Source: Utricularia gibba (lineage: Eukaryota > Plantae > Magnoliophyta). Taken from it: DNA of 64,000 nucleotides. The position numbers and the translations under genes were made by a program. The notes under the pieces were generated by a model. That model was not told the DNA's origin, did no database searches, and saw only the letters and a list, made by a program, of their open reading frames with translations. Shown one piece after another: positions 1 through 48,135 of the stretch. Position 1 is the first letter of the stretch, and each line of letters begins with the position of its first letter. The stretch covers positions 42,101 to 106,100 of the forward strand of contig NEEC01000144.1 in NCBI GenBank assembly GCA_002189035.1. Direction: 5' to 3'.

Positions 1-309
1 GGCAAAAAAAGTGATCCATTTATTAACGTTGGGTTTTCGGCAGCTGCCTACATTGTTTCTGAAGGAAAAGCTTGTCGTTTTTGGGTGGGTGCTTCGTTGG
101 AAGTTCATCCGGACCCAAGGTTCTGTTCGACTCCTGAGCCCAATCGGGTCCTATTCGACGAAAATCGTGATGCATTTTTGAAGTTAGGATGTCATGAGCA
201 CCCCAAATGGTTTTCATCCACAAGCTTTATATTTGAGGAGGCGCTCTCGAGGGGCACTAGGATCGGGCCGGAGTCAGGTCGGGCTCGGGCCCATAGTCAT
301 TTGTAGCCC
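1..309. repeat. Representative monomer made of two homologous ~155-bp subunits (A starts ggcaaaaaaagtgatcc; B starts gacgaaaatcgtgatgc)
   Basis: GTGATCC at 11 and GTGATGC at 167, next GTGATCC at 321. AAGCTT at 68, 222 and 378 (spacings 154 and 156). The halves align colinearly. Confidence 0.9.
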
Positions 310-434
310 GGCAAAAAAAAGTGATCCATTTATTAACGTTGGGTTTTCGGCAGCTGCCTACATGGTTTCTGAAGGAAAAGCTTGTCGTTTTGGGTGGGTG
401 CTGTTGTTGGGAACTTCGTCCGGACCCAAGGTTC

Positions 435-445
435 GGTTCGACTCC
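435..445 (+). promoter_or_regulatory. Pol III B-box-like motif GGTTCGACTCC (example; present in most monomers), function unproven
   Basis: Exact match to the tRNA-gene internal promoter B-box consensus GGTTCGANTCC. No A-box or cloverleaf is recognisable. Confidence 0.4.
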
Positions 446-931
446 TGAGCCCAATGGGTCCTATTCGACGAAAATCGTGATGCATTTTTGAAGTTAGGAT
501 GTCATGAGCACCCCAAATGGTTTTCTTGTCCACAAGCTTTATATTTGAGGAGGCGCTCTCGAGGGGCACTAGGATCTGGCCGGAGGTCGGGTCGAACTCG
601 GGCCCATAGTCATTTGTAGCCCGGCAAAAAAAGTGATCCATTTATTAACGTTGGGTTTTCGGCAGCTGCCTACATTGTTTCTGAAGGAAAAGCTTGTCGT
701 TTTTGGGTGGTGCTTGTTGGAATTCGTCCGGACCCAAGGTTCGGTTCGACTCCTGAGCCCAATCGGGTCCTATTCGACGAAAATCGTGATGCATTTTTGA
801 AGTTAGGATGTCATGAGCACCCCAAATGGTTTTCTCATCCACAAGCTTTATATTTGAGGAGGCGCTCTCGAGGGGCACCAGGATCGGGCCGGAGGTCAGG
901 TCGGGCTCGGGCCCATAGTCATTTGTAGCCC

Positions 932-3900
932 GGCAAAAAAAGTGATCCATTTATTAACGTTGGGTTTTCGGCAGCTGCCTACATGGTTTCTGAAGGAAAA
1001 GCTTGTCGTTTTTGGGTGGGTGCTTTTGTTGGGAACTTCGTCCGGACCCAAGGTTCGGTTCGACTCCTGAGCCCAATGGGTCCTATTCGACGAAAATCGT
1101 GATGCATTTTTTGAAGTTAGGATGTCATGAGCACCCCAAATGGTTTTCTTGTCCACAAGCTTTATATTTGAGGAGGCGCTCTCGAGGGGCACTAGGATCG
1201 GGCCGGAGGTCAGGTCGGCTCGGCCCATAGTCATTTGTAGCCCGGCAAAAAAGTGATCCATTTATTAACGTTGGGTTTTCGGCACCTGCCTACATGGTTT
1301 CTGAAGGAAAAGCTTGTCGTTTTTGGGTGGGTGCTGTTGTTCGGAACTTCGTCCGGACCCAAGTTCGGTTCGACTCCTGAGCCCAATCGGGTCCTATTCG
1401 ACGAAAATCGTGATGCATTTTTTGAAGTTAGGATGTCATGAGCACCCCAAATGGTTTTCTCAACACATGCTTTTTATTTGAGGAGGCGCTCTCGAGGGGC
1501 ACTAGGATCGGGCCGGAGGTCAGTCGCTCGGGCCCATAGTCATTTGTAGCCCGGCAAAAAAAGTGATCCATTATTAACGTTGGGTTTTCGGCAGCTGCCT
1601 ACATGGTTTCTGAAGGAAAAGCTTGTCGTTTTTGGTGGGTGCTTTTCGGAACTTCGTCCGGACCCAAGGTTCGGTTCGACTCCTGAGCCCAATCGGGTCC
1701 TATTCGACGAAAATCGTGATGCATTTTTTGAAGTTAGGATGTCATGAGCACCCCAAATGGTTTCTCAACACAGCTTTTTATTTGAGAGGCGCTCTCGAGG
1801 GGCACTAGGATCTGGCCGGAGGTCGGGTCGAACTCGGGCCCATAGTCATTTGTAGCCGGCAAAAAAAGTGATCCATTTATTAACGTTGGGTTTTCGGCAG
1901 CTGCCTACATGTTTCTGAAGGAAAAGCTTGTCGTTTTTGGGTGGGTGCTTCGTTGGAAGTTCATCCGGACCCAAGGTTCTGTTCGACTCCTGAGCCCAAT
2001 CGGGTCCTATTCGACGAAATCGTGATGCATTTTTTGAAGTTAGGATGTCATGAGCACCCCAAATGGTTTTCTCATCCACAAGCTTTTATTTGAGGAGGCG
2101 CTCTCGAGGGGCACCGGATCGGGCCGGAATCAGGTCGGGCTCGGGCCCATAGTCATTTGTAGCCCGGCAAAAAAAGTGATCCATTTATTAACGTTGGGTT
2201 TTCGGCAGCTGCCTACATGGTTTCTGAAGGAAAAGCTTGTCGTTTTTGGGGGGTGCTTTGTTGGGAACTTCGTCCGGACCCAAGGTTCGGTTCGACTCTT
2301 GAGCCCAATGGGTCCTATTCGACGAAAATCGTGATGCATTTTTTGAAGTTAGGATGTCATGAGCACCCAAATGGTTTCTTGTCCACAAGCTTTATATTTG
2401 AGGAGGCGCTCTCGAGGGGCACTAGGATCTGGCCGGAGGTCGGGTCGAACTCGGCCCATAGTCATTTGTAGCCCGGCAAAAAAAGTGATCCATTTATTAA
2501 CGTTGGGTTTTCGGCAGCTGCCTACATTGTTTCTGAAGGAAAAGCTTGTCGTTTTTTTGGTGGGTGCTTGTTGGAAGTTCATCCGGACCCAAGGTTCTGT
2601 TCGACTCCTGAGCCCAATCGGGTCCTATTCGACGAAAATCGTGATGCATTTTTGAAGTTAGGATGTCATGAGCACCCCAAATGGTTTTCTCATCCACAAG
2701 CTTTATATTTGAGGAGGCGCTCTCGAGGGGCACCAGGATCGGGCCGGAGTCAGGTCGGCTCGGGCCCATAGTCATTTGTAGCCCGGCAAAAAAAGTGATC
2801 CATTTATTAACGTTGGGTTTTCGGCAGCTGCCTACATGGTTTCTGAAGGAAAAGCTTGTCGTTTTTGGGTGGGTGCTGTTGTTGGGAACTTCGTCCGGAC
2901 CCAAGGTTCGGTTCGACTCCTGAGCCCAATGGGTCCTATTCGACGAAAATCGTGATGCATTTTTTGAAGTTAGGATGTCATGGCACCCCAAATGGTTTTC
3001 TTGTCCACAAGCTTTATATTTGAGGAGGCGCTCTCGAGGGCACTAGGATCTGGCCGGAGGTCGGTCGAACTCGGCCCATAGTCATTTGTAGCCCGGCAAA
3101 AAAAGTGATCCATTTATTAACGTTGGGTTTTCGGCAGCTGCCTACATTGTTTCTGAAGGAAAAGCTTGTCGTTTTTGGGTGGTGCTTGTTGGGAAGTTCA
3201 TCCGGACCCAAGGTTCTGTTCGACTCCTGAGCCCAATCGGGTCCTATTCGACGAAAATCGTGATGCATTTGAAGTTAGGATGTCATGAGCACCCCAAATG
3301 GTTTTCTGAACCACAAGCTTTTTTATTTGAGGAGGCGCTCTCGAGGGCACTAGGATCTGGCCGAGGTCATGTCGAACTCGGGCCCATAGTCATTTGTAGC
3401 CCGGCAAAAAAAGTGATCCATTTACTAACGTTGGGTTTTCGGCAGCTGCCTACATGGTTTCTGAAGGAAAAGCTTGTCGTTTTTGGTGGGTGCTGTTGTT
3501 CGGAACTTCGTCCGGACCCAAGGTTCGGTTCGACTCCTGAGCCCAATCGGGTCCTATTCGACGAAAATCGTGATGCATTTTTGAAGTTAGGATGTCATGA
3601 GCACCCCAAATGTTTTCTCAACCACAGCTTTTTATTTGAGAGGCGCTCTCGAGGGGCACTAGGATGGCCGGAGGTCAGTGGCCATCATTTAGCCCGCAAA
3701 AAAAGTGATCCATTTATTAACGTTGGGTTTTCGGCAGCTGCCTACATGGTTTCTGAAGGAAAAGCTTGTCGTTTTTGGGTGGGTGCTGTTGTTCGGAAAT
3801 TCGTCCGGACCCAAGGTTCGGTTCGACTCCTGAGCCCAATCGGGTCCTATTCGACGAAATCGTGATGCATTTTACTAAAGTTAGGATGTCATGAGCACCC

Positions 3901-6900
3901 CAAATGGTTTTCTCATCCACAAGCTTTATATTTGAGGAGGCGCTCTCGAGGGGCACCAGGATCGGGCCGGAGTCGGTCGGCTCGGGCCCATAGTCATTTG
4001 TAGCCCGGCAAAAAAAGTGATCCATTTATTAACGTTGGGTTTTCGGCAGCTGCCTACATGGTTTCTGAAGGAAAAGCTTGTCGTTTTTGGAGGGTGCTTT
4101 GTTGGGAACTTCGTCCGGACCCAAGGTTCGGTTCGACTCTGAGCCCAATGGGGTCCTATTCGACGAAAATCGTGATGCATTTTTTGAAGTTAGGATGTCA
4201 TGAGCACCCCAAATGGTTTCTTGTCCACAAGCTTTATATTTGAGGAGGCGCTCTCGAGGGGCACTAGGATCGGGCCGGAGGTCAGGTCGGGCTCGGCCCA
4301 TAGTCATTTGTAGCCCGGCAAAAAAGTGATCCATTTATTAACGTTGGGTTTTCGGCACCTGCCTACATGGTTTCTGAAGGAAAAGCTTGTCGTTTTTGGG
4401 TGGGTGCTTTGTTCGGAACTTCGTCCGGACCCAAGGTTCGGTTCGACTCCTGAGCCCAATCGGGTCCTATTCGACGAAAATCGTGATGCATTTTTTGAAG
4501 TTAGGATGTCATGAGCACCCCAAATTTTTCTCAACACAGCTTTTTATTTGAGGAGGCGCTCTCGAGGGCACTAGGATCGGGCCGGAGGTCATCGGCTCGG
4601 GCCCATAGTCATTTGTAGCCCGGCAAAAAAAGTGATCCATTTATTAACGTTGGGTTTTCGGCAGCTACATGGTTTCTGAAGGAAAAGCTTGTCGTTTTTG
4701 GTGGGTGCTTTGTTGGGAACTTCGTCCGGACCCAAGGTTCGGTTCGACTCCTGAGCCCAATCCGGTCCTATTCGACGAAAATCGTGATGCATTTTTGAAG
4801 TTAGGATGTCATGAGCACCCCAAATGGTTTTCTCAACCACATGCTTTTATTTGAGGAGGCGCTCTCGAGGGGCACTAGGATCTGGCCGGAGGTCGGGTCG
4901 AACTCGGGCCCATAGTCATTTGTAGCCCGGCAAAAAAGTGATCCATTTATTAACGTTGGGTTTTCGGCAGCTGCCTACATGGTTTCTGAAGGAAAAGCTT
5001 GTCGTTTTTGGGTGGGTGCTTGTTGGAATTCGTCCGGACCCAAGGTTCGTTCGACTCCTGAGCCCAATCGGGTCCTATTCGACGAAATCGTGATGCATTT
5101 TTGAAGTTAGGATGTCATGAGCACCCCAAATGGTTTTCTCATCCACAAGCTTTATATTTGAGGAGGCGCTCTCGAGGGGCACCGGATCGGCCGGAGTCAG
5201 GTCGGCTCGGGCCCATAGTCATTTGTAGCCCGGCAAAAAAAGTGATCCATTTATTAACGTTGGGTTTTCGGCAGCTGCCTACATGGTTTCTGAAGGAAAA
5301 GCTTGTCGTTTTTGGGTGGGTGCTGTTGTTGGGAACTTCGTCCGGACCCAAGGTTCGGTTCGACTCCTGAGCCCAATGGGTCCTATTCGACGAAAATCGT
5401 GATGCATTTTTTGAAGTTAGGATGTCATGAGCACCCCAAATGGTTTTCTTGTCCACAAGCTTTATATTTGAGGAGGCGCTCTCGAGGGGCACTAGGATCT
5501 GGCCGGAGGTCGGGTCGAACTCGGGCCCATAGTCATTTGTAGCCCGGCAAAAAAGTGATCCATTTATTAACGTTGGGTTTTCGGCAGCTGCCTACATGGT
5601 TTCTGAAGGAAAAGCTTGTCGTTTTGGTGGGTGCTTGTTGGAATTCGTCCGGACCCAAGGTTCGTTCGACTCCTGAGCCCAATCGGGTCCTATTCGACGA
5701 AAATCGTGATGCATTTTTTGAAGTTAGGATGTCATGAGCACCCCAAATGGTTTTCTCATCCACAAGCTTTATATTTGAGGAGGCGCTCTCGAGGGGCACC
5801 GGATCGGGCCGGAGTCAGGTCGGGCTCGGGCCCATAGTCATTTGTAGCCCGGCAAAAAAAAGTGATCCATTTATTAACGTTGGGTTTTCGGCAGCTGCCT
5901 ACATGGTTTCTGAAGGAAAAGCTTGTCGTTTTTTGGGGGTGCTGTTGTTGGGAACTTCGTCCGGACCCAAGGTTCGGTTCGACTCTGAGCCCAATGGGGT
6001 CCTATTCGACGAAAATCGTGATGCATTTTTTGAAGTTAGGATGTCATGAGCACCCCAAATGGTTTTCTGTCCACAAGCTTTATATTTGAGGAGGCGCTCT
6101 CGAGGGGCACTAGGATCTGGCCGGAGGTCGGGTCGAACTCGGGCCCATAGTCATTTGTAGCCCGGCAAAAAAAGTGATCCATTTATTAACGTTGGGTTTT
6201 CGGCAGCTGCCTACATTGTTTCTGAAGGAAAAGCTTGTCGTTTTTGGGTGGGTGCTTTCGTTGGAATTCGTCCGGACCCAAGGTTCTGTTCGACTCCTGA
6301 GCCCAATCGGGTCCTATTCGACGAAAATCGTGATGCATTTTTGAAGTTAGGATGTCATGAGCACCCCAAATGGTTTTCTGTCCACAAGCTTTTATTTTGA
6401 GAGGCGCTCTCGAGGGCACTAGGATCTGGCCGGAGTCGGGTCGAACTCGGGGCCATAGTCATTTGTAGCCCGGCAAAAAAAGTGATCCATTTATTAACGT
6501 TGGGTTTTCGGCAGCTGCCTACATGGTTTCTGAAGGAAAAGCTTGTCGTTTTTGGGTGGGTGCTGTTGTTCGGAACTTCGTCCGGACCCAAGGTTCGGTT
6601 CGACTCCTGAGCCCAATCGGGTCCTATTCGACGAAAATCGTGATGCATTTTTTGAAGTTAGGATGTCATGAGCACCCCAAATGGTTTTCTCAACCACAAG
6701 CTTTTTATTTGAGGAGGCGCTCTCGAGGGGCACTAGGATCTGGCCGGAGGTCAGGTCGAACTCGGCCCATAGTCATTTGTAGCCCGGCAAAAAAAAGTGA
6801 TCCATTTATTAACGTTGGGTTTTCGGCAGCTGCCTACATGGTTTCTGAAGGAAAAGCTTGTCGTTTTTGGGTGGTGCTGTTGTTCGGAAATTCGTCCGAC

Positions 6901-9900
6901 CCAAGGTTCGGTTCGACTCCTGAGCCCAATCGGGTCCTATTCGACGAAAATCGTGATGCATTTTTTGAAGTTAGGATGTCATGAGCACCCCAAATGGTTT
7001 TCTCATCCACAAGCTTTATATTTGAGGAGGCGCTCTCGAGGGGCACCAGGATCGGGCCGGAGTCGGGTCGGGCTCGGGCCCATAGTCATTTGTAGCCCGG
7101 CAAAAAAAGTGATCCATTTATTAACGTTGGGTTTTCGGCAGCTGCCTACATGGTTTCTGAAGGAAAAGCTTGTCGTTTTTGGTGGGTGCTTTTGTTGGGA
7201 ACTTCGTCCGGACCCAAGGTTCGGTTCGACTCCTGAGCCCAATGGGGTCCTATTCGACGAAAATCGTGATGCATTTTTTGAAGTTAGGATGTCATGAGCA
7301 CCCCAAATGGTTTTCTTGTCCACAAGCTTTATATTTGAGGAGGCGCTCTCGAGGGCACTAGGATCGGGCCGAGTCAGGTCGGGCTCGGGCCCATAGTCAT
7401 TTGTAGCCCGGCAAAAAAAGTGATCCATTTATTAACGTTGGGTTTTCGGCAGCTGCCTACATGGTTTCTGAAGGAAAAGCTTGTCGTTTTTGGGTGGGTG
7501 CTGTTGTTCGGAACTTCGTCCGGACCCAAGTTCGGTTCGACTCCTGAGCCCAATCGGGTCCTATTCGACGAAAATCGTGATGCATTTTTTGAAGTTAGGA
7601 TGTCATGAGCACCCCAAATGGTTTTCTCAACACAAGCTTTTTATTTGAGGAGGCGCTCTCGAGGGCACTAGGATCGGGCCGGAGTCAGTCGCTCGGGCCC
7701 ATAGTCATTTGTAGCCCGGCAAAAAAGTGATCCATTTATTAACGTTGGGTTTTCGGCAGCTGCCTACATGGTTTCTGAAGGAAAAGCTTGTCGTTTTTGG
7801 TGGTGCTTTTTTGGAACTTCGTCCGGACCCAAGGTTCGGTTCGACTCCTGAGCCCAATCGGTCCCCGAAAATCGTGATGCATTTTTGAAGTTAGGATGTC
7901 ATGAGCACCCCAAATGGTTTTCTCAACCACAGCTTTTTATTTGAGAGGCGCTCTCGAGGGCACTAGGATCTGGCCGGAGGTCGGGTCGAACTCGGGCCCA
8001 TAGTCATTTGTAGCCCGGCAAAAAAAGTGATCCATTTTATTAACGTTGGGTTTTCGGCAGCTGCCTACATTGTTTCTGAAGGAAAAGCTTGTCGTTTTTG
8101 GTGGGTGCTTGTTGGAAGTTCATCCGGACCCAAGGTTCTGTTCGACTCCTGAGCCAATCGGGTCCTATTCGACGAAAATCGTGATGCATTTTTGAAGTTA
8201 GGATGTCATGAGCACCCCAAATGGTTTTCTCATCCACAAGCTTTATATTTGAGGAGGCGCTCTCGAGGGGCACCAGGATCGGGCCGGAGTCAGGTCGGGC
8301 TCGGGCCCATAGTCATTTGTAGCCCGGCAAAAAAAGTGATCCATTTATTAACGTTGGGTTTTCGGCAGCTGCCTACATGGTTTCTGAAGGAAAAGCTTGT
8401 CGTTTTTGGGGGGTGCTTTGTTGGAACTTCGTCCGGACCCAAGGTTCGGTTCGACTCCTGAGCCCAATGGTCCTATTCGACGAAAATCGTGATGCATTTT
8501 TTGAAGTTAGGATGTCATGAGCACCCCAAATGGTTTTCTTGTCCACAAGCTTTATATTTGAGGAGGCGCTCTCGAGGGGCACTAGGATCTGGCCGGAGGT
8601 CGGGTCGAACTCGGCCCATAGTCATTTGTAGCCCGGCAAAAAAAGTGATCCATTTATTAACGTTGGGTTTTCGGCAGCTGCCTACATGGTTTCTGAAGGA
8701 AAAAGCTTGTTTTTGGGGGTGCTTTGTTGGGAATTCGTCCGGACCAAGGTTCGGTTCGACTCCTGAGCCCAATCGGGTCCTATTCGACGAAAATCGTGAT
8801 GCATTTTTTGAAGTTAGGATGTCATGAGCACCCCAAATGGTTTTCTCAACCACAAGCTTTTTATTTGAGGAGGCGCTCTCGAGGGGCACTAGGATCTGGC
8901 CGGAGGTCGGTCGAACTCGGGCCATAGTCATTTGTAGCCCGGCAAAAAAAGTGATCCATTTACTAACGTTGGGTTTTCGGCAGCTGCCTACATGGTTTCT
9001 GAAGGAAAAGCTTGTCGTTTTTGGGTGGGTGCTGTTGTTCGGAACTTCGTCCGGACCCAAGGTTCGGTTCGACTCCTGAGCCCAATCGGGTCCTATTCGA
9101 CGAAAATCGTGATGCATTTTTTGAAGTTAGGATGTCATGAGCACCCCAAATGGTTTTCTCAACACAGCTTTTTATTTGAGGAAGGCGCTCTCGAGGGCAC
9201 TAGGATCTGGCCGGAGGTCAGTCGAACTCGGCCCATAGTCATTTGTAGCCCGGCAAAAAAAAGTGATCCATTTATTAACGTTGGGTTTTCGGCAGCTGCC
9301 TACATGGTTTCTGAAGGAAAAGCTTGTCGTTTTTGGGTGGGTGCTGTTGTTCGGAAATTCGTCCGGACCCAAGGTTCGGTTCGACTCCTGAGCCCAATCG
9401 GTCCTATTCGACGAAATCGTGATGCATTTTTGAAGTTAGGATGTCATGAGCACCCCAAATGGTTTTCTCTCCACAAGCTTTATATTTGAGGAGGCGCTCT
9501 CGAGGGGCACCAGGATCGGGCCGGAGTCGGGTCGGGCTCGGGCCCATAGTCATTTGTAGCCCGGCAAAAAAAGTGATCCATTTATTAACGTTGGGTTTTC
9601 GGCAGCTGCCTACATGGTTTCTGAAGGAAAAGCTTGTCGTTTTTGGGTGGGTGCTTTGTTGGGAACTTCGTCCGGACCCAAGGTTCGGTTCGACTCTGAG
9701 CCCAATGGGTCCTATTCGACGAAAATCGTGATTTTTTGAAGTTAGGATGTCATGAGCACCCCAAATGGTTTTCTTGTCCACAAGCTTTATATTTGAGGAG
9801 GCGCTCTCGAGGGCACTAGGATCGGGCCGGAGGTCAGGTCGCTCGGCCCATAGTCATTTGTAGCCCGGCAAAAAATGTGATCCATTTATTAACGTTGGGT

Positions 9901-11092
9901 TTTCGGCACCTGCCTACATGGGTGAAGGAAAAGCTTGTCGTTTTTGGGGTGGTGCTGTTGTTCGGAATTCGTCCGGACCCAAGTTCGGTTCGACTCCTGA
10001 GCCCAATCGGTCCTATTCGAAAAATCGTGATGCATTTTTTTGAAGTTAGGATGTCATGAGCACCCCAAATGGTTTTCTCAACACATGCTTTTTATTTGAG
10101 AGGCGCTCTCGAGGGGCACTAGGATCGGCCGGAGGTCTCGACTCGGGCCCATAGTCATTTGTAGCCCGGCAAAAAAAAGTGATCCATTTATTAACGTTGG
10201 GTTTTCGGCAGCTGCCTACATGGTTTCTGAAGGAAAAGCTTGTCGTTTTTGGTGGGTGCTTTGTTGGAACTTCGTCCGGACCCAAGGTTCGGTTCGACTC
10301 CTGAGCCCAATCCGGTCCTATTCGACGAAAATCGTGATGCATTTTTTGAAGTTAGGATGTCATGAGCACCCCAAATGGTTTTCTCAACCACATGCTTTTT
10401 ATTTGAGGAGGCGCTCTCGAGGGGCACTAGGATCGGCCGGAGGTCGGGTCGCTCGGGCCCATAGTCATTTGTAGCCCGGCAAAAAAAGTGATCCATTTAT
10501 TAACGTTGGGTTTTCGGCAGCTGCCTACATTGTTTCTGAAGGAAAAGCTTGTCGTTTTTGTGGGTGCTTGTTTGGAATTCATCCGGACCCAAGGTTCTGT
10601 TCGACTCCTGAGCCCAATCGGGTCCTATTCGACGAAAATCGTGATGCATTTTTGAAGTTAGGATGTCATGAGCACCCCAAATGGTTTTCTCATCCACAAG
10701 CTTTATATTTGAGGAGGCGCTCTCGAGGGGCACCGGATCGGGCCGGAGTCGGTCGGCTCGGGCCCATAGTCATTTGTAGCCCGGCAAAAAAAGTGATCCA
10801 TTTATTAACGTTGGGTTTTCGGCAGCTGCCTACATGGTTTCTGAAGGAAAAGCTTGTCGTTTTTGGGAGGGTGCTGTTGTTGGAACTTCGTCCGGACCCA
10901 AGGTTCGGTTCGACTCTTGAGCCCAATGGGTCCTATTCGACGAAAATCGTGATGCATTTTTTGAAGTTAGGATGTCATGGCACCCCAAATGGTTTTCTTG
11001 TCCACAAGCTTTATATTTGAGGAGGCGCTCTCGAGGGCACTAGGATCTGGCCGGAGGTCGGTCGAACTCGGGCCCATAGTCATTTGTAGCCC
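932..11092. repeat. HOR domain 1: 10-mer, 10-mer and 8-mer units (932-4006, 4007-7098, 7099-9562) plus a partial unit
   Basis: The same order of monomer haplotypes recurs. The gttcggaac then gttcggaaattcg monomer pair starts at about 3403, 6472 and 8941. The 5th-type monomer (tcaacaca, cagtcgctc-like end) starts at about 1244, 4316, 7409 and 9867 (spacings of 10, 10 and 8 monomers). Confidence 0.65.
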
Positions 11093-14000
11093 GGCAAAAA
11101 AAGTGATCCATTTATTAACGTTGGGTTTTCGGCAGCTGCCTACATGGTTTCTGAAGGAAAAGCTTGTCGTTTTTGGGTGGGTGCTGTTGTTGGAACTTCG
11201 TCCGGACCCAAGGTTCGGTTCGACTCCTGAGCCCAATGGGTCCTATTCGACGAAAATCGTGATGCATTTTTTGAAGTTAGGATGTCATGAGCACCCCAAA
11301 TGGTTTTCTCATCCACAAGCTTTATATTTGAGGAGGCGCTCTCGAGGGCACAGGATCGGGCCGGAGGTCGGGTCGGGCTCGGCCCATAGTCATTTGTAGC
11401 CCGGCAAAAAAAGTGATCCATTTATTAACGTTGGGTTTTCGGCAGCTGCCTACATGGTTTCTGAAGGAAAAAGCTTGTCGTTTTTGGGTGGGTGCTTTCG
11501 TTGGGAATTCGTCCGGACCCAAGGTTCGGTTCGACTCCTGAGCCCAATGGGGTCCTATTCGACGAAAATCGTGATGCATTTTTTGAAGTTAGGATGTCAT
11601 GAGCACCCCAAATGGTTTTCTTGTCCACAAGCTTTATATTTGAGGAGGCGCTCTCGAGGGGCACCAGGATCGGCCGGAGGTCGGGTCGCTCGGCCCATAG
11701 TCATTTGTAGCCCGGCAAAAAAAGTGATCCATTTATTAACGTTGGTTTTCGGCAGCTGCCTACATGGTTTCTGAAGGAAAAGCTTGTCGTTTTTGGGAGG
11801 GTGCTTTTGTTTGGGAACTTCGTCCGGACCCAAGGTTCGGTTCGACTCTGAGCCCAATGGGGTCCTATTCGACGAAAATCGTGATGCATTTTTTGAAGTT
11901 AGGATGTCATGGGCACCCCAAATGGTTTTCTTGTCCACAAGCTTTATATTTGAGGAGGCGCTCTCGAGGGGCACTAGGATCTGGCCGGAGGTCGGTCGAA
12001 CTCGGGCCCATAGTCATTTGTAGCCCGGCAAAAAAAGTGATCCATTTATTAACGTTGGGTTTTCGGCAGCTGCCTACATGGTTTCTGAAGGAAAAGCTTG
12101 TCGTTTTTGGTAAGGTGCTTTCATTGGGAACTTCGTTCGGACCAATCGGTCCTATTCGACGAAAATCGTGATGCATTTATTGAAGTTAGGATGTCATGAG
12201 CACCCCAAATGGTTTTCTCATCCACAAGCTTTATATTTGAGGAGGCGCTCTCGAAGGCACCGGGATCGGCCGAGGTCGGGTCGGGCTCGGCCCATAGTCA
12301 TTTGTAGCCCGGCAAAAAAAGTGATCCATTTATTAACGTTGGGTTTTCGGCAGCTGCCTACATGGTTTCTGAAGGAAAAGCTTGTCGTTTTTGGGTGGGT
12401 GCTGTTGTTCGGAACTTCGTCCGGACCCAAGGTTCGGTTCGACTCCTGAGCCCAATCGGGTCCTATTCGACGAAAATCGTGATGCATTTTTTTGAAGTTA
12501 GGATGTCATGAGCACCCCAAATGGTTTTCTTGTCCACAAGCTTTATATTTGAGGAGGCGCTCTCGAGGGGCACTAGATCTGGCCGGAGGTCGGGTCGAAC
12601 TCGGCCCATAGTCATTTGTAGCCCCGGCAAAAAAAGTGATCCATTTATTAACGTTGGGTTTTTTCGGCAGCTGCCTACATTGTTTCTGAAGGAAAAGCTT
12701 GTCGTTTTTGGGTGGGTGCTTTGTTGGGAAGTTCATCCGGACCCAAGGTTCTGTTCGACTCCTGAGCCCAATGGGGTCCTATTCGACGAAAATCGTGATG
12801 CATTTTTTGAAGTTAGGATGTCATGAGCACCCCAAATGGTTTTCTTGTCCACAAGCTTTATATTTGAGGAGGCGCTCTCGAGGGCACTAGGATCTGCCGG
12901 AGGTCGGTCGAACTCGGGCCCATAGTCATTTGTAGCCCGGCAAAAAAAGTGATCCATTTATTAACGTTGGGTTTTCGGCAGCTGCCTACATGGTTTCTGA
13001 AGGAAAAGCTTGTCGTTTTTGGGTGGGTGCTTTTGTTGGAACTTCGTCCGGACCCAAGGTTCGGTTCGACTCCTGAGCCCAATGGGTCCTATTCGACGAA
13101 AATCGTGATGCATTTTTTGAAGTTAGGATGTCATGGCACCCCAAATGGTTTTCTTGTCCACAAGCTTTATATTTGAGGAGGCGCTCTCGAGGGGCACCAG
13201 GATCGGGCCGGAGGTCAGGTCGGGCTCGGCCCCATAGTCATTTGTAGCCCGGCAAAAATGTGATCCATTTATTAACGTTGGGTTTTCGGCACCGCCTACA
13301 GTTTGTGAAGGAAAAGCTTGTCGTTTTTGGGTGGGTGCTGTTGTTCGGAACTTCGTCCGGACCCAAGTTCGGTTCGACTCCTGAGCCCAATCGGTCCTAT
13401 TCGACGAAAATCGTGATGCATTTTTTGAAGTTAGGATGTCATGAGCACCCCAAATGGTTTTCTCAACCACATGCTTTTTATTTGAGGAGGCGCTCTCGAG
13501 GGGCACTAGGATCGGGCCGGAGGTCATATCGATCTCGGGCCCATAGTCATTTGTAGCCCGGCAAAAAAAGTGATCCATTTATTAACGTTGGGTTTTCGGC
13601 AGCTGTGGTTTCTGAAGGAAAAGCTTGTCGTTTTTGGGTGGGTGCTTTTTGGGAACTTCGTCCGGACCCAAGGTTCGGTTCGACTCCTGAGCCCAATGGG
13701 GTCCTATTCGACGAAAATGTGATGCATTTTTTGAAGTTAGGATGTTGGCACCAAATGGTTTTCTCAACCACATGCTTTTATTTGAGGAGGCGCTCTCGAG
13801 GGGCACTAGGATCTGGCCGGAGGTCGGTCGAACTCGGGCCCATAGTCATTTGTAGCCCGGCAAAAAAAGTGATCCATTTATTAACGTTGGGTTTTCGGCA
13901 GCTGCCTACATGGTTTCTGAAGGAAAAGCTTGTCGTTTTTGGGTGGGTGCTGTTGTTTCGGAACTTCGTCCGGACCCAAGGTTCGGTTCGACTCCTGAGC

Positions 14001-17000
14001 CCAATGGGTCCTATTCGACGAAAATCGTGATGCATTTTTTGAAGTTAGGATGTCATGAGCACCCCAAATGGTTTTCTCAACCACAAGCTTTTATTTGAGG
14101 AGGCGCTCTCGAGGGGCACTAGGATCTGGCCGGAGGTCAGGTCGAACTCGGGCCTAGTCATTTTGTAGCCCGGCAAAAAAGTGATCCATTTATTAACGTT
14201 GGGTTTTCGGCAGCTGCCTACATGGTTTCTGAAGGAAAAGCTTGTCGTTTTTGGGTGGGTGCTGTTGTTCGGAACTTCGTCCGGACCCAAGGTTCGGTTC
14301 GACTCCTGAGCCCAATCGGGTCCTATTCGACGAAATCGTGATGCATTTTTAAAGTTAGGATGTCATGAGCACCCCAAATGGTTTTCTCATCCACAAGCTT
14401 TATTTGAGGAGGCGCTCTCGAGGGGCACTAGGATCGGGCCGGAGGTCGGGTCGGGCTCGGCCATAGTCATTTGTAGCCCGGCAAAAAAAGTGATCCATTT
14501 ATTAACGTTGGGTTTTCGGCAGCTGCCTACATGGTTTCTGAAGGAAAAGCTTGTCGTTTTTGGGTGGGTGCTTTTGTTGGGAACTTCGTCCGGACCCAAG
14601 GTTCGGTTCGACTCTGAGCCCAATGGGGTCCTATTCGACGAAAATCGTGATGCATTTTTTGAAGTTAGGATGTCATGGGCACCCAAATGGTTTTCTTGTC
14701 CACAAGCTTTATATTTGAGGAGGCGCTCTCGAGGGGCACTAGGATCGGGCCGGAGGTCGGGTCGAACTCGGGCCCATAGTCATTTGTAGCCGGCAAAAAA
14801 TGTGATCCATTTATTAACGTTGGGTTTTTCGGCAGCCTACATGGTTTGTGAAGGAAAAGCTTGTCGTTTTTGGGTGGGTGCTGTTGTTGGGAACTTCGTC
14901 CGGACCCAAGGTTCGGTTCGACTCCTGAGCCCAATCGGGTCCTATTCGACGAAAATCGTGATGCATTTTTTGAAGTTAGGATGTCATGAGCACCAAATGG
15001 TTTTCTCCACAAGCTTTTTATTTGAGGAGGCGCTCTCGAGGGGCACTAGGATCGGGCCGGAGGTCATATCGATCTCGGCCCATAGTCATTTGTAGCCCGG
15101 CAAAAAAAGTGATCCATTATTAACGTTGGGTTTTCGGCAGCTGCCATGGTTTCTGAAGGAAAAGCTTGTCGTTTTTGGTTGGGTGCTTTCATTGGGAACT
15201 TCGTCCGGACCCAAGGTTCGGTTCGACTCCTGAGCCCAATGGGTCCTATTCGACGAAATCGTGATGCATTTTGAAGTTAGGATGTCATGAGCACCCCAAA
15301 TGGTTTTCTCAACCACATGCTTTTATTTGAGGAGGCGCTCTCGAGGGGCACTAGGATCTGGCCGGAGGTCGGGTCGAACTCGGCCCATAGTCATTTGTAG
15401 CCCGGCAAAAAAAGTGATCCATTTATTAACGTTGGGTTTTCGGCAGCTGCCTACATGGTTTCTGAAGGAAAAGCTTGTCGTTTTTGGGTGGGTGCTGTTG
15501 TTGGAAATTCGTCCGGACCCAAGGTTTCGTTCGACTCCTGAGCCCAATCGGGTCCTATTCGACGAAAATCGTGATGCATTTTTTGAAGTTAGGATGTCAT
15601 GAGCACCCAAATGGTTTTCTCAACCACAAGCTTTATATTTGAGGAGGCGCTCTCGAGGGGCACTAGGATCGGGCCGGAGGTCATTCGAACTCGGGCCCAT
15701 AGTCATTTGTAGCCCGGCAAAAAAAGTGATCCATTTATTAACGTTGGGTTTTCGGCAGCTGCCTACATGGTTTCTGAAGGAAAAGCTTGTCGTTTTTGGG
15801 TGGGTGCTTTGTTGGGAACTTCGTCCGGACCCAAGGTTCGGTTCGACTCCTGAGCCCAATCGGGTCCTATTCGACGAAAATCGTGATGCATTTTTGAAGT
15901 TAGGATGTCATGAGCACCCCAAATGGTTTTCTCACCACAAGCTTTATATTTGAGGAGGCGCTCTCGAGGGCACTAGGATCGGCCGGAGGTCGGTCGGGCT
16001 CGGGCCCATAGTCATTTGTAGCCCGGCAAAAAAAGTGATCCATTTATTAACGTTGGGTTTTCGGCAGCTGCCTACATGGTTTCTGAAGGAAAAGCTTGTC
16101 GTTTTTGGGTGGGTGCTTTGTTGGAAGTTCGTCCGGACCCAAGGTTCGGTTCGACTCCTGAGCCCAATCGGGTCCTATTCGACGAAAATCGTGATGCATT
16201 TTTGAAGTTAGGATGTCATGAGCACCCCAAATGGTTTTCTCATCCACAAGCTTTATATTTGAGGAGGCGCTCTCGAGGGGCACTAGGATCGGGCCGGAGG
16301 TCAGGTCGGGCTCGGGCCCATAGTCATTTGTAGCCCGGCAAAAAAAGTGATCCATTTATAACGTTGGGTTTTCGGCAGCTGCCTACATGGTTTCTGAAGG
16401 AAAAGCTTGTCGTTTTTGGGTGGGTGCTGTTGTTGGGAACTTCGTCCGGACCCAAGGTTCGGTTCGACTCCTGAGCCCAATGGGGTCCTATTCGACGAAA
16501 ATCGTGATGCATTTTTTGAAGTTAGGATGTCATGAGCACCCCAAATGGTTTTCTTGTCCACAAGCTTTATATTTGAGGAGGCGCTCTCGAGGGGCACTAG
16601 GATCGGCCGGAGGTCGGGTCGATCGGGCCCATAGTCATTTGTAGCCCGGCAAAAAAAGTGATCCATTTATTAACGTTGGGTTTTCGGCAGCTGCCTACAT
16701 GGTTTCTGAAGGAAAAGCTTGTCGTTTTTGGGTGGGTGCTTTGTTGGGAAGTTCATCCGGACCCAAGGTTCGTTCGACTCCTGAGCCCAATCGGGTCCTA
16801 TTCGACGAAAATCGTGATGCATTTTTGAAGTTAGGATGTCATGAGCACCCCAAATGGTTTTCTCAACCACAAGCTTTTTATTTGAGGAGGCGCTCTCGAG
16901 GGCACTAGGATCGGCCGGAGGTCGGGTCGAACTCGGGCCCATAGTCATTTGTAGCCCGGCAAAAAAAGTGATCCATTTATTAACGTTGGGTTTTCGGCAG

Positions 17001-20000
17001 CTGCCTACATGGTTTCTGAAGGAAAAGCTTGTCGTTTTTGGGTGGGTGCTTTGTTGGGAACTTCGTCCGGACCCAAGGTTCGGTTCGACTCCTGAGCCCA
17101 ATGGGGTCCTATTCGACGAAAATCGTGATGCATTTTTTGAAGTTAGGATGTCATGAGCACCCCAAATGGTTTTCTCATCCACAAGCTTTATATTTGAGGA
17201 GGCGCTCTCGAGGGCACCGGGATCGGGCCGGAGGTCGGGTCGGGCTCGGCCCCATAGTCATTTGTAGCCCGGCAAAAAAAGTGATCCATTTATTAACGTT
17301 GGGTTTTCGGCAGCTGCCTACATGGTTTCTGAAGGAAAAGCTTGTCGTTTTTGGGTGGGTGCTTTGTTGGAATTCGTCCGGACCCAAGGTTCGGTTCGAC
17401 TCCTGAGCCCAATCGGGTCCTATTCGACGAAAATCGTGATGCATTTTTTGAAGTTAGGATGTCATGAGCACCCAAATGGTTTTCTCATCCACAAGCTTTA
17501 TATTTGAGGAGGCGCTCTCGAGGGGCACCGGGATCGGGCCGGAGGTCGGGTCGGGCTCGGCCCATAGTCATTTGTAGCCCGGCAAAAAAAGTGATCCATT
17601 TATTAACGTTGGGTTTTCGGCAGCTGCCTACATGGTTTCTGAAGGAAAAGCTTGTCGTTTTTGGGTGGGTGCTGTTTTTTGGAATTCGTCCGGACCCAAG
17701 GTTCGGTTCGACTCCTGAGCCCAATCGGGTCCTATTCGACGAAAATCGTGATGCATTTTTGAAGTTAGGATGTCATGAGCACCCCAAATGGTTTTCTTGT
17801 CCACAAGCTTTATATTTGAGGAGGCGCTCTCGAGGGGCACTAGGATCGGCCGGAGGTCGGGTCGAACTCGGGCCCATAGTCATTTGTAGCCCGGCAAAAA
17901 AAGTGATCCATTTATTAACGTTGGGTTTTCGGCAGCTGCCTACATGTTTCTGAAGGAAAAGCTTGTCGTTTTTGGGTGGGTGCTTTGTTGGGAATTCGTC
18001 CGGACCCAAGGTTCGGTTCGACTCCTGAGCCCAATGGGGTCCTATTCGACGAAAATCGTGATGCATTTTTTGAAGTTAGGATGTCATGAGCACCCCAAAT
18101 GGTTTTCTTGTCCACAAGCTTTATATTTGAGGAGGCGCTCTCGAGGGGCACTAGGATCGGGCCGGAGGTCGGTCGGGCTCGGCCCATAGTCATTTGTAGC
18201 CCGGCAAAAAAAGTGATCCATTTATTAACGTTGGGTTTTCGGCACCTGCCTACATGGTTTCTGAAGGAAAAGCTTGTCGTTTTTGGGTGGGTGCTGTTGT
18301 TCGGAAATTCGTCCGGACCCAAGGTTCGGTTCGACTCCTGAGCCCAATCGGGTCCTATTCGACGAAAATCGTGATGCATTTTTTGAAGTTAGGATGTCAT
18401 GAGCACCCCAAATGGTTTTCTCAACCACATGCTTTATTTGAGGAGGCGCTCTCGAGGGGCACTAGGATCGGGCCGGAGGTCATATCGATCTCGGGCCCAT
18501 AGTCATTTGTAGCCCGGCAAAAAAAGTGATCCATTTATTAACGTTGGGTTTTCGGCAGCTGCCTACATGGTTTCTGAAGGAAAAGCTTGTCGTTTTTGGG
18601 TGGGTGCTTTTTTGGGAACTTCGTCCGGACCCAAGGTTCGGTTCGACTCCTGAGCCCAATGGGGTCCTATTCGACGAAAATCGTGATGCATTTTTTGAAG
18701 TTAGGATGTCATGAGCACCCCAAATGGTTTTCTTGTCCACAAGCTTTATATTTGAGGAGGCGCTCTCGAGGGGCACCAGGATCGGGCCGGAGGTCAGGTC
18801 GGGCTCGGCCCCATAGTCATTTGTAGCCCGGCAAAAAAAGTGATCCATTTATTAACGTTGGGTTTTCGGCAGCTGCCTACATGGTTTCTGAAGGAAAAGC
18901 TTGTCGTTTTTGGGTGGGTGCTTTGTTGGAAATTCGTCCGGACCCAAGGTTCGGTTCGACTCCTGAGCCCAATCGGGTCCTATTCGACGAAAATCGTGAT
19001 GCATTTTTGAAGTTAGGATGTCATGAGCACCCCAAATGGTTTTCTCAACCACAAGCTTTATATTTGAGGAGGCGCTCTCGAGGGGCACTAGGATCGGCCG
19101 GAGGTCGGGTCGAACTCGGGCCCATAGTCATTTGTAGCCCGGCAAAAAAAGTGATCCATTTATTAACGTTGGGTTTTCGGCAGCTGCCTACATGGTTTCT
19201 GAAGGAAAAGCTTGTCGTTTTTGGGTGGGTGCTGTTGTTCGGAACTTCGTCCGGACCCAAGGTTCGGTTCGACTCCTGAGCCCAATCGGGTCCTATTCGA
19301 CGAAAATCGTGATGCATTTTTTGAAGTTAGGATGTCATGAGCACCCCAAATGGTTTTCTCAACCACAAGCTTTTTATTTGAGGAGGCGCTCTCGAGGGGC
19401 ACTAGGATCGGGCCGGAGGTCATATCGATCTCGGGCCCATAGTCATTTGTAGCCCGGCAAAAAAAGTGATCCATTTATTAACGTTGGGTTTTCGGCAGCT
19501 GCCTACATGGTTTCTGAAGGAAAAGCTTGTCGTTTTTGGGTGGGTGCTTTGTTGGGAACTCGTCCGGACCCAAGGTTCGGTTCGACTCCTGAGCCCAATG
19601 GGGTCCTATTCGACGAAAATCGTGATGCATTTTTTGAAGTTAGGATGTCATGAGCACCCCAAATGGTTTTCTGTCCACAAGCTTTATATTTGAGGAGGCG
19701 CTCTCGAGGGGCACCAGGATCGGGCCGAGGTCAGGTCGGGCTCGGCCCCATAGTCATTTGTAGCCCGGCAAAAAAGTGATCCATTTATTAACGTTGGGTT
19801 TTCGGCACTGCCTACATGGTTTCTGAAGGAAAAGCTTGTCGTTTTTGGGTGGGTGCTTTGTTCGGAAATTCGTCCGGACCAAGGTTTCGGTTCGACTCCT
19901 GAGCCCCAATCGGGTCCTATTCGACGAAAATCGTGATGCATTTTTGAAGTTAGGATGTCATGAGCACCCCAAAATGGTTTTCTCAACACATGCTTTTTAT

Positions 20001-23000
20001 TTGAGGAGGCGCTCTCGAGGGGCACTAGGATCGGCCGGAGGTCGGGTCGAACTCGGGCCCATAGTCATTTGTAGCCCGGCAAAAAAAGTGATCCATTTAT
20101 TAACGTTGGGTTTTCGGCACCTGCCTACATGTTTCTGAAGGAAAAGCTTGTCGTTTTTGGGTGGGTGCTGTTGTTCGGAACTTCGTCCGGACCCAAGGTT
20201 CGGTTCGACTCCTGAGCCCAATCGGGTCCTATTCGACGAAAATCGTGATGCATTTTTTGAAGTTAGGATGTCATGAGCACCCCAAATGGTTTTCTCAACC
20301 ACATGCTTTTTATTTGAGGAGGCGCTCTCGAGGGGCACTAGGATCGGGCCGGAGGTCATATCGATCTCGGGCCCATAGTCATTTGTAGCCCGGCAAAAAA
20401 AGTGATCCATTTATTAACGTTGGGTTTTCGGCAGCTGCCTACATGGTTTCTGAAAAAGCTTGTCGTTTTTGGGAGGGTGCTGTTGTTGGGAACTTCGTCC
20501 GGACCCAAGGTTCGGTTCGACTCCTGAGCCCAATGGGTCCTATTCGACGAAAATCGTGATGCATTTTTTGAAGTTAGGATGTCATGGCACCCCCAAATGG
20601 TTTTCTTGTCCACAAGCTTTATATTTGAGGAGGCGCTCTCGAGGGCACTAGGATCTGGCCGGAGGTCGGGTCGAACTCGGGCCCATAGTCATTTGTAGCC
20701 CGGCAAAAAAAGTGATCCATTTATTAACGTTGGGTTTTCGGCAGCTGCCTACATGTTTCTGAAGGAAAAGCTTGTCGTTTTTGGGTGGGTGCTTTCGTTG
20801 GGAATTCATCCGGACCCAAGGTTCGTTCGACTCCTGAGCCCAATGGGGTCCTATTCGACGAAAATCGTGATGCATTTTTTGAAGTTAGGATGTCATGAGC
20901 ACCCCAAATGGTTTCTTGTCCACAAGCTTTATATTTGAGGAGGCGCTCTCGAGGGCACCAGGATCGGGCCGGAGGTCAGGTCGGGCTCGGCCCCATAGTC
21001 ATTTGTAGCCCGGCAAAAAAAGTGATCCATTTTAACGTTGGGTTTTCGGCAGCTGCCTACATGGTTTCTGAAGGAAAAGCTTGTCGTTTTTGGGTGGGGT
21101 GCTGTTGTTCGGAACTTCGTCCGGACCCAAGGTTCGGTTCGACTCCTGAGCCCAATCGGGTCCTATTCGACGAAAATCGTGATGCATTTTTTGAAGTTAG
21201 GATGTCATGAGCACCCCAAATGGTTTTCTCAACCACATGCTTTTTATTTGAGGAGGCGCTCTCGAGGGGCACTAGGATCGGGCCGGAGGTCGTCGATCTC
21301 GGCCCATAGTCATTTGTAGCCCGGCAAAAAAGTGATCCATTTATTAACGTTGGGTTTTCGGCAGCTGCCTACATGGTTTCTGAAGGAAAAGCTTGTCGTT
21401 TTTGGTGGTGCTTTTTGGGAACTTCGTTCGGACCCAATCCGGTCCTATTCGACGAAAATCGTGATGCATTTTTGAAGTTAGGATGTCATGAGCACCCCAA
21501 ATGGTTTTCTCATCCACAAGCTTTATATTTGAGGAGGCGCTCTCGAGGGCACCGGGATCGGCCGGAGGTCGGGTCGGGCTCGGGCCCATAGTCATTTGTA
21601 GCCCGGCAAAAAAAGTGATCCATTTATTAACGTTGGGTTTTCGGCAGCTGCCTACATGGTTTCTGAAGGAAAAGCTTGTCGTTTTTGGGTGGGTGCTGTT
21701 GTTCGGAACTTCGTCCGGACCCAAGGTTCGGTTCGACTCCTGAGCCCAATCGGGTCCTATTCGACGAAAATCGTGATGCATTTTTTGAAGTTAGGATGTC
21801 ATGAGCACCCCAAATGGTTTTCTTGTCCACAAGCTTTATATTTGAGGAGGCGCTCTCGAGGGGCACTAGGATCGGCCGGAGGTCGGGTCGAACTCGGGCC
21901 CATAGTCATTTGTAGCCCGGCAAAAAAAGTGATCCATTTATAACGTTGGGTTTTCGGCAGCTGCCTACATGGTTTCTGAAGGAAAAGCTTGTCGTTTTTG
22001 GGTGGGTGCTTTTGTTGGAATTCATCCGGACCCAAGGTTCGGTTCGACTCCTGAGCCAATGGGTCCTATTCGACGAAAATCGTGATGCATTTTTGAAGTT
22101 AGGATGTCATGAGCACCCCAAATGGTTTTCTTGTCCACAAGCTTTATATTTGAGGAGGCGCTCTCGAGGGCACTAGGATCGGGCCGGAGGTCAGGTCGGG
22201 CTCGGCCCCATAGTCATTTGTAGCCCGGCAAAAAAGTGATCCATTTATTAACGTTGGGTTTTCGGCACTGCCTACATGGTTTCTGAAGGAAAAGCTTGTC
22301 GTTTTTGGGTGGGTGCTGTTGTTCGGAAATTCGTCCGGACCAAGGTTCGGTTCGACTCCTGAGCCCAATCGGGTCCTATTCGACGAAAATCGTGATGCAT
22401 TTTTTGAAGTTAGGATGTCATGAGCACCCCAAATGGTTTTCTCAACCACATGCTTTTTATTTGAGGAGGGCGCTCTCGAGGGGCACTAGGATCGGGCCGG
22501 AGGTCATATCGATCTCGGGCCCATAGTCATTTGTAGCCCGGCAAAAAAAGTGATCCATTTTAACGTTGGGTTTTCGGCAGCTGCCTACATGGTTTCTGAA
22601 GGAAAAGCTTGTCGTTTTTGGGTGGGTGCTTTGTTGGGAACTTCGTCCGGACCCAAGGTTCGGTTCGACTCCTGAGCCCAATCGGTCCTATTCGACGAAA
22701 ATCGTGATGCATTTATTGAAGTTAGGATGTCATGAGCACCCCAAATGGTTTTCTCACCACAAGCTTTATATTTGAGAAGGCGCTCTCGAGGGGCACTAGG
22801 ATCTGGCCGGAGTCGGGTCGAACTCGGGCCCATAGTCATTTGTAGCCCGGCAAAAAAAGTGATCCATTTATTAACGTTGGGTTTTCGGCAGCTGCCTACA
22901 TGTTTCTGAAGGAAAAGCTTGTCGTTTTTGGGTGGGTGCTTTGTTGGAAGTTCCCGGACCCAAGGTTCTGTTCGACTCCTGAGCCAATCGGGTCCTATTC

Positions 23001-26000
23001 GACGAAAATCGTGATGCATTTTTAAAGTTAGGATGTCATGAGCACCCCAAATGGTTTTCTCATCCACAAGCTTTATATTTGAGGAGGCGCTCTCGAGGGG
23101 CACCGGGATCGGGCCGGAGGGTCTCGGGCTATAGTCATTTGTAGCCCGGCAAAAAAAGTGATCCATTTATTAACGTTGGGTTTTCGGCAGCTGCCTACAT
23201 GGTTTCTGAAGGAAAAGCTTGTCGTTTTTGGGAGGGTGCTGTTGTTGGGAACTTCGTCCGGACCCAAGGTTCGGTTCGACTCTTGAGCCCAATGGGGTCC
23301 TATTCGACGAAAATCGTGATGCATTTTTTGAAGTTAGGATGTCATGAGCACCCCAAATGGTTTTCTTGTCCACAAGCTTTATATTTGAGGAGGCGCTCTC
23401 GAGGGGCACTAGGATCGGCCGGAGGTCGGGTCGAACTCGGGCCCATAGTCATTTGTAGCCCGGCAAAAAAAGTGATCCATTTATTAACGTTGGGTTTTCG
23501 GCACCTGCCTACATGTTTCTGAAGGAAAAGCTTGTCGTTTTTGGGGGGTGCTTTGTTGGGAAGTTCGTCCGGACCCAAGGTTCGTTCGACTCCTGAGCCC
23601 AATCGGGTCCTATTCGACGAAAATCGTGATGCATTTTTGAAGTTAGGATGTCATGAGCACCCCAAATGGTTTTCTCACACAAGCTTTTTATTTGAGGAGG
23701 CGCTCTCGAGGGGCACTAGGATCGGCCGGAGGTCAGGTCGAACTCGGGCCCATAGTCATTTGTAGCCCGGCAAAAAAAGTGATCCATTTATAACGTTGGG
23801 TTTTCGGCAGCTGCCTACATGGTTTCTGAAGGAAAAGCTTGTCGTTTTTGGGTGGGTGCTGTTGTTCGGAACTTCGTCCGGACCAAGGTTCGGTTCGACT
23901 CCTGAGCCCAATCGGGTCCTATTCGACGAAAATCGTGATGCATTTTTGAAGTTAGGATGTCATGAGCACCCCAAATGGTTTTCTCATCCACAAGCTTTAT
24001 ATTTGAGGAGGCGCTCTCGAGGGGCACCGGGATCGGGCCGGAGGTCGGGTCGGGCTCGGCCCATAGTCATTTGTAGCCCGGCAAAAAAAGTGATCCATTT
24101 ATTAACGTTGGGTTTCGGCAGCTGCCTACATGGTTTCTGAAGGAAAAGCTTGTCGTTTTTGGGTGGGTGCTTTTGTTGGGAATTCATCCGGACCCAAGGT
24201 TCGGTTCGACTCCTGAGCCCAATGGGGTCCTATTCGACGAAAATCGTGATGCATTTTTTTGAAGTTAGGATGTCATGAGCACCCCAAATGGTTTTCTCAA
24301 CCACAAGCTTTTTATTTGAGGAGGCGCTCTCGAGGGGCACTAGGATCTGGCCGGAGGTCGGGTCGAACTCGGGCCCATAGTCATTTGTAGCCCGGCAAAA
24401 AAAGTGATCCATTTATTAACGTTGGGTTTTCGGCAGCTGCCTACATGGTTTCTGAAGGAAAAGCTTGTCGTTTTTGGGTGGGTGCTTTTGTTGGGAATTC
24501 GTCCGGACCCAAGGTTCGGTTCGACTCCTGAGCCCAATCGGGTCCTATTCGACGAAAATCGTGATGCATTTTTAAAGTTAGGATGTCATGAGCACCCCAA
24601 ATGGTTTTCTCATCCACAAGCTTTATATTTGAGGAGGCGCTCTCGAGGGGCACCGGGATCGGGCCGGAGGGGTCGGGCTCGGGCCCATAGTCATTTGTAG
24701 CCGGCAAAAAAAGTGATCCATTTATAACGTTGGGTTTTCGGCAGCTGCCTACATGGTTTCTGAAGGAAAAGCTTGTCGTTTTTGGGTGGGTGCTTTTTTG
24801 GAAATTCGTCCGGACCCAAGGTTCGGTTCGACTCCTGAGCCAATCGGGTCCTATTCGACGAAAATCGTGATGCATTTTTGAAGTTAGGATGTCATGAGCA
24901 CCCCAAATGGTTTTCTTGTCCACAAGCTTTATATTTGAGGAGGCGCTCTCGAGGGGCACTAGGATCGGCCGGAGGTCGGGTCGAACTCGGCCCATAGTCA
25001 TTTGTAGCCCGGCAAAAAAGTGATCCATTTATTAACGTTGGGTTTTCGGCAGCTGCCTACATGGTTTCTTAAGGAAAAGCTTGTCGTTTTTGGTGGTGCT
25101 TTCATTGGGAACTTCGTTCGGACCAATCCGGTCCTATTCGACGAAAATCGTGATGCATTTATTGAAGTTAGGATGTCATGAGCACCCCAAATGGTTTTCT
25201 CTCATCCACAAGCTTTATATTTGAGGAGGCGCTCTCGAGGGCACCGGGATCGGCCGGAGGTCGGGTCGGGCTCGGGCCCATAGTCATTTGTAGCCCGGCA
25301 AAAAAAGTGATCCATTTATTAACGTTGGGTTTTCGGCAGCTGCCTACATGGTTTCTGAAGGAAAAGCTTGTCGTTTTTGGGTGGGTGCTGTTGTTCGGAA
25401 CTTCGTCCGGACCCAAGGTTCGGTTCGACTCCTGAGCCCAATCGGGTCCTATTCGACGAAAATCGTGATGCATTTTTTGAAGTTAGGATGTCATGAGCAC
25501 CCCAAATGGTTTTCTTGTCCACAAGCTTTATATTTGAGGAGGCGCTCTCGAGGGGCACTAGGATCGGCCGGAGGTCGGGTCGAACTCGGGCCCATAGTCA
25601 TTTGTAGCCCGGCAAAAAAAGTGATCCATTTATTAACGTTGGGTTTTCGGCAGCTGCCTACATGTTTCTGAAGGAAAAGCTTGTCGTTTTTGGGTGGGTG
25701 CTTTCGTTGGGAATTCGTCGGACCCAAGGTTCGGTTCGACTCCTGAGCCCAATGGGGTCCTATTCGACGAAAATCGTGATGCATTTTTTGAAGTTAGGAT
25801 GTCATGAGCACCCCAAATGGTTTTCTTGTCCACAAGCTTTATATTTGAGGAGGCGCTCTCGAGGGGCACCAGGATCGGGCCGGAGGTCGGTCGGGCTCGG
25901 CCCCATAGTCATTTGTAGCCCGGCAAAAAAGTGATCCATTTATTAACGTTGGGTTTTTCGGCAGCCTGCCTACATGGTTTTGAAGGAAAAGCTTGTCGTT

Positions 26001-47506: not shown

Positions 47507-48135
47507 GGCAAAAAAAGTGATCCATTTATTAACGTTGGGTTTTCGGCAGCTGCCTACATGGTTTCTGAAGGAAAAGCTTGTCGTTTTTGGGAGGGTGCTG
47601 TTGTTGGGAACTTCGTCCGGACCCAAGGTTCGGTTCGACTCCTGAGCCCAATGGGGTCCTATTCGACGAAAATCGTGATGCATTTTTGAAGTTAGGATGT
47701 CATGGGCACCCCAAATGGTTTTCTTGTCCACAAGCTTTATATTTGAGGAGGCGCTCTCGAGGGGCACTAGGATCGGGCCGGAGGTCGGGTCGAACTCGGG
47801 CCCATAGTCATTTGTAGCCCGGCAAAAAAAGTGATCCATTTATTAACGTTGGGTTTTCGGGCAGCTGCCTACATTGTTTCTGAAGGAAAAGCTTGTCGTT
47901 TTTGGGTGGGTGCTTTCGTTGGGAAGTTCATCCGGACCCAAGGTTCTGTTCGACTCCTGAGCCAATGGGGTCCTATTCGACGAAAATCGTGATGCATTTT
48001 TTGAAGTTAGGATGTCATGAGCACCCCAAATGGTTTTCTTGTCCACAAGCTTTATATTTGAGGAGGCGCTCTCGAGGGGCACCAGGATCGGGCCGGAGGT
48101 CAGGTCGGGCTCGGCCCCATAGTCATTTGTAGCCC

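Follow-up and report, generated by a model that had tools for sequence, protein, structure and literature searches.

The satellite that fills the 64-kb stretch of Utricularia gibba DNA analyzed here (the window) has a repeat unit of about 314 bp, which very probably derives from two adjacent ~157-bp copies that diverged and were then amplified together, an old dimeric higher-order repeat having thereby become a new monomer. The genome paper of this species is reportedly that of Lan et al. 2017. TRF finds a single head-to-tail array that occupies the whole window and continues past both of its ends (Table 1), and the array is uninterrupted, with one gap longer than 20 bp in a tiling of the window by the two subunits, called A and B below. 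A consensus built from 159 clean copies, which were excised and aligned, is 314 bp long with a mean column agreement of 0.96. The 3' half of the unit, B, measures 154 bp in the copy at 1099-1252 and 157 bp in the consensus.

What was found is eukaryotic satellite DNA, that is, a long, head-to-tail, non-coding array whose copies are homogenized. The longest open frames of the consensus comprise 82 and 128 codons, and the longer open reading frames of the window result from 1-bp deletions that shift the frame. A protein word search with a consensus-like open reading frame of 121 codons returned no candidate relative, and an exact look-up of two long open reading frames from the window returned no record. 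The observed/expected ratio of CpG is 0.97, without depletion.

Table 1. Positions of the array, of one representative dimer with its halves, and of shortened A subunits within the 64-kb window
Feature	Position	Strand	Details
Satellite array	1..64000	+	TRF: period 310, 207 copies, 92% matches, 4% indels
One exact A-B dimer	942..1252	+	Tiling boundaries; halves 69.5% identical, z 6.45
Half A, 157 bp, begins GTGATCC	942..1098	+	HindIII 999-1004 (one); GGTTCGACTCC 1057-1067
Half B, begins GTGATGC	1099..1252	+	HindIII 1157-1162 (one); unit's sole XhoI 1181-1186
Short A variant (130-131 bp), without the 26-bp segment that includes GGTTCGACTCC	12037..12167	+	Tiling
Further short A units	21332-21460, 25020-25149, 31213-31343, 33982-34110, 35513-35642, 38275-38404, 44149-44280, 46923-47052		

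Two collinear halves within one repeat unit

A preliminary description of this DNA had read the ~310-bp monomer as a cryptic heterodimer of two related subunits, and this reading holds, as the unit consists of collinear, homologous halves that measure 157 + 157 bp in the consensus. The 34 identities in 48 positions that had been counted between 942-989 and 1099-1146 are exact and stand in an ungapped alignment. Over their full length, the two halves of this copy share 98 of 141 aligned positions (69.5%) in a global alignment, with z = 6.45 against 5000 dinucleotide-preserving shuffles. For the consensus halves, a gapped global alignment gives 101 of 146 positions (69%), and a joint alignment of 413 subunits gives 91 of 156 (58%) with three gap columns. 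Global z values for the consensus range from 6.5 with EDNAFULL-like scoring to 8.1 with +1/-1 scoring, and those of local alignments from 6 to 13 against dinucleotide shuffles. A scheme of +2/-3 with free end gaps, which suits sequences of ~90% identity, produced a null global alignment, and schemes suited to ~65% identity were used instead. The proposed comparison with shuffled controls came out clearly in favor of homology, with the A-B score beyond every shuffle (0/3000 for the consensus, 0/5000 for the copy), and reversed and reverse-complemented versions of the halves scored at background. Register 0 outscores every other one of the 157 circular permutations of B. Equal-length, collinear halves whose similarity lies above composition-matched controls mark the unit as dimer-derived. 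Conservation is highest in the first ~50 bp of both halves, between A and B as well as from copy to copy, and the final ~35 bp align poorly without gaps.

The periodicity of the array agrees with these alignments. Circular autocorrelation of the consensus has its sole peak at a lag of 157 bp, where 52.9% of positions match as compared to a background of 25% (sd 2.9%), and no sub-period shorter than 157 bp was found inside either half. In the raw window, the off-diagonal expected at ~155 bp is present as a peak at a lag of 155-156 bp, blurred by indels, that rises more than 4 sd over background in each 2-kb block. The term cryptic is nevertheless apt, since TRF gives a period of 310 only and blastn at E ≤ 1e-5 yields no A-to-B cross hits. 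The shared AAGCTT that had been pointed out between the halves is real and accounts for 377 HindIII sites spaced 152-159 bp apart. In silico, the predicted HindIII ladder of ~155 bp and XhoI ladder of ~310 bp are both obtained, the latter from 206 sites in the window at intervals of ~307-314 bp, and ApaI, for which a ~310-bp ladder was likewise predicted, cuts at 114 sites, with intervals of ~310 or ~620 bp.

Alternation, divergence, and local variants

Tiling of the window resolved 208 A and 207 B subunits, which alternate strictly in 415/415. Nine apparent AA junctions each proved to be one A unit that a 26-bp deletion had broken in two, and no A-only or B-only monomeric run exists among the 415 subunits. 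The two types are separated by 48 diagnostic columns, each fixed at more than 90% in both A and B, and a search of the units for conversion tracts, seen as runs of bases of the other type, found none. Substitution divergence is 2.9% among A subunits and 3.8% among B subunits as compared to 43% between the types, or 31% when A and B are aligned pairwise with gaps. A and B are thus separate, internally homogeneous types. The divergence between them (31-43%) exceeds the divergence within either (3-4%) more than 10-fold, which implies that A and B separated more than 10 times as long ago as each type was last homogenized.

Local higher-order periods come in whole dimers. From ~25000 to 64000 of the window, the array shows weak higher-order periodicity at 9 dimers (~2.8 kb), and near 49.7-53 kb the substitution distance at an offset of 9 falls to 1.3-1.6% as compared to about 3.5% overall. 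The first 15 kb of the window carry other higher-order periods (10, 4, 8, and 5).

Copies also differ by small indels of a markedly one-sided kind. Relative to the consensus, 1-bp deletions and insertions number 760 and 16 in A and 685 and 29 in B, an excess of deletions of ~25-50 to 1 that is enriched in homopolymer runs. This excess is probably long-read assembly error. It places the true unit nearer to 314 bp (2 x 157) than to the 310 bp given by TRF, and the probable error inflates copy-to-copy differences, which makes the divergence values approximate in their detail. Substitutions that vary from copy to copy are concentrated in a few short stretches. One such cluster precedes the HindIII site of half B (for example, CTTGTCC, CTCATCC, and CTCAACA), and others lie in half B near the GGTCGGGTCGGGCTC segment and in half A around GCTTTGTTGGGAACTTCGTCC.

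The nine shortened A units are spread over 12-47 kb of the window, and the end-points of their 26-bp deletion are identical in 9/9. The missing segment reads CCCAAGG...CTGAGC and is bounded by a CCCAA direct repeat; the deletion looks like slippage. The spacing of the short copies is that of part of a local higher-order repeat.

The deleted segment includes the 11-mer GGTTCGACTCC, which has the form of the Pol III B-box consensus. It occurs exactly in 145 units, in half A only and on the + strand only, one site being at 435-445 of the window and 144 others elsewhere in it. At the homologous place half B has GGGTCGGGCTC, or GGGTCGAACTC in a minority variant. GGTTCGACTCC stands by itself, without an A-box, a tRNA, or an Rfam signal. 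A tRNA origin of the satellite, which this motif brings to mind, was considered and rejected: ARAGORN found no tRNA in the satellite, Rfam gave no match (E ≤ 1 on 3.2 kb and E ≤ 10 on 641 bp), and the nine A units that lack the motif persist in the array. An origin from 5S rDNA was likewise rejected, there being no 5S signal from Rfam even at E ≤ 10, and by-eye resemblances of 6-8 bases were discounted. Given the ARAGORN and Rfam negatives, a tRNA or 5S origin is unsupported.

Possible origins and roles of the dimer

The preliminary description had also proposed a history, in which an ancestral repeat of ~156 bp was duplicated, diverged, and was re-amplified as a fixed A-B dimer. The part that stands is that two diverged ~157-bp copies became fixed as an A-B unit and were amplified in that form, and its basis is the full-length collinearity, the equal halves, the alternation in 415/415, the 48 diagnostic positions, the lack of conversion, and the more than 10-fold excess of A-B over within-type divergence. 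Such a history may be outlined as follows. Two neighboring ~157-bp copies of one sequence would have diverged to about 58-69% identity, after which the A-B pair would have been amplified and homogenized as one unit in a 314-bp register, presumably through unequal crossing-over or conversion. At 30-40% apart, A and B may no longer pair or recombine with each other; with subunits too different to pair, unequal exchange would be confined to the 314-bp register, and such confinement fits both the perfect alternation and the absent conversion. That an array of monomers came before the dimer is suggested by internal evidence and by analogy. This order has no outgroup, as the window contains no monomeric 157-bp array and the metagenome, prokaryotic, and viral scans retrieved no relatives. 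The process by which a two-variant unit becomes a new monomer has been documented by Melters et al. 2013, who reported higher-order structure in 76/171 species (PMC4053949).

An explanation of a different kind is that the dimer is kept by function, the satellite being a centromeric repeat with one nucleosome (a CENH3 nucleosome) on each half in the manner proposed for human alpha-satellite dimers. The 157-bp subunit is of the same size class as CentO and CentC, the long array is homogenized and has higher-order structure, and a passage in PMC4410388 describes alpha-satellite dimers that position pairs of CENP-A nucleosomes, all of which speak for such a role. However, the harmonics of WW and SS dinucleotides at 9.8-11.2 bp do not exceed those of shuffles (p 0.2-0.75), single-strand fold energy shows no excess (z -0.19), dyad symmetry is not notable, and putative centromeric regions of U. 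gibba are described as being without satellite repeats in a passage of PMC8333044 that cites the genome paper. Translational phasing set by unit length stays compatible with the lack of a ~10-bp periodicity. Retention of the dimer by function is therefore considered rather unlikely. The satellite most likely functions as a structural, heterochromatic repeat block, and a centromeric role is possible. It is doubtful that this dimeric, nucleosome-sized satellite is the real centromeric repeat of U. gibba; if it were, the apparent lack of satellites at the centromeres would be an artefact of assembly, with two differently specified nucleosome positions in every 314-bp unit. It is only as a centromeric sequence, in a species reported to be without centromeric satellites, that the repeat would gain weight.

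A further account dispenses with any earlier 157-bp array. Here a single-copy ~157-bp stretch was duplicated just once, or related subrepeats were present as a pair from the outset in a source element such as a transposon or an rDNA spacer, and only the 314-bp pair was later amplified into a satellite. The complete lack of monomeric A-only or B-only runs in 415 subunits is in keeping with this account, as is a plant satellite that has been traced to subrepeats of the rDNA spacer (PMC3212565). Against it, no positive sign of a source element emerged (Rfam at E ≤ 10 and ARAGORN were both negative), 157 bp fits the usual class of plant satellite monomers, and the fixation of dimers from monomer arrays is the route commonly documented (PMC4053949), which together leave amplification from a lone pair with a low probability. 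That A and B resemble each other by chance or through shared base composition has virtually no probability and is refuted: although both halves are AT-rich at the start and GC-rich at the end, and a 157-bp harmonic is present in their WW and SS dinucleotide signals, the dinucleotide shuffles never reach the observed score, register 0 tops the circular permutations, the reversed and reverse-complement controls remain at background, and the 34/48 run is ungapped.

The analysis supplies the correct anatomy, 2 x 157 bp in a fixed dimer, for one of the main satellites of a much-studied minimal plant genome. This is of practical use for repeat annotation, the design of probes, and the reading of restriction ladders, and it adds one more case of dimer fixation as a path to new satellite monomers. 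The dimer by itself settles no open question, and because satellites put together in this way are well known, the observation is right but unremarkable.

Comparison with known satellites

No description of this satellite turned up in a literature search that included six conserved 15-18-mers, and scans of prokaryotic genomes and of viral sequences gave no match to it. A metagenome scan with a 23-mer common to A and B returned six matches of 23-27 bp each, none of which is the satellite; these matches are due to chance. One of the contigs matched in this manner, Ga0126339_10021576, is unrelated to the satellite and is itself rich in tandem repeats (1-1510, 2125-3737, and 3753-4301), both of its ends carrying inverted 19-bp arrays, which enclose a 210/401-bp repeat.

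The centromeric satellites CentO of rice (155 bp) and CentC of maize (156 bp) are bound by CENH3. The U. gibba subunit, at 157 bp, falls into the same size class, the comparison being one of length only. Another plant satellite, the subtelomeric X43.1 of Silene latifolia (313 bp; PMC3212565), is nearly alike in unit length. Identity with X43.1 was rejected, as a search of the window for its published probe core found nothing, even when 3 mismatches were allowed.

Dimeric satellites offer closer parallels in organization. The 343-bp alpha satellite of New World monkeys is a diverged dimer of a 171-bp monomer (PMC4053949) and, like the satellite described here, is a doubled nucleosome-sized unit with weakly related halves in which the dimer is now dominant, although the two have no sequence relationship. 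The 171-bp monomer of the monkeys is still found in related species and can be aligned to both halves, whereas no monomeric relative of the U. gibba satellite was found. Among plants, the centromeric AB dimer of Sorghum bicolor (~280 bp, formed from two ~140-bp variants; PMC4053949, Fig. 6) is alike in the strict alternation of A and B and in the separate clustering of the variants. In Sorghum, however, A and B differ by few SNPs and TRF sees both periods (Fig. 6 legend, PMC4053949), whereas the halves of the U. gibba unit are 31-43% diverged and TRF detects the dimer period alone.
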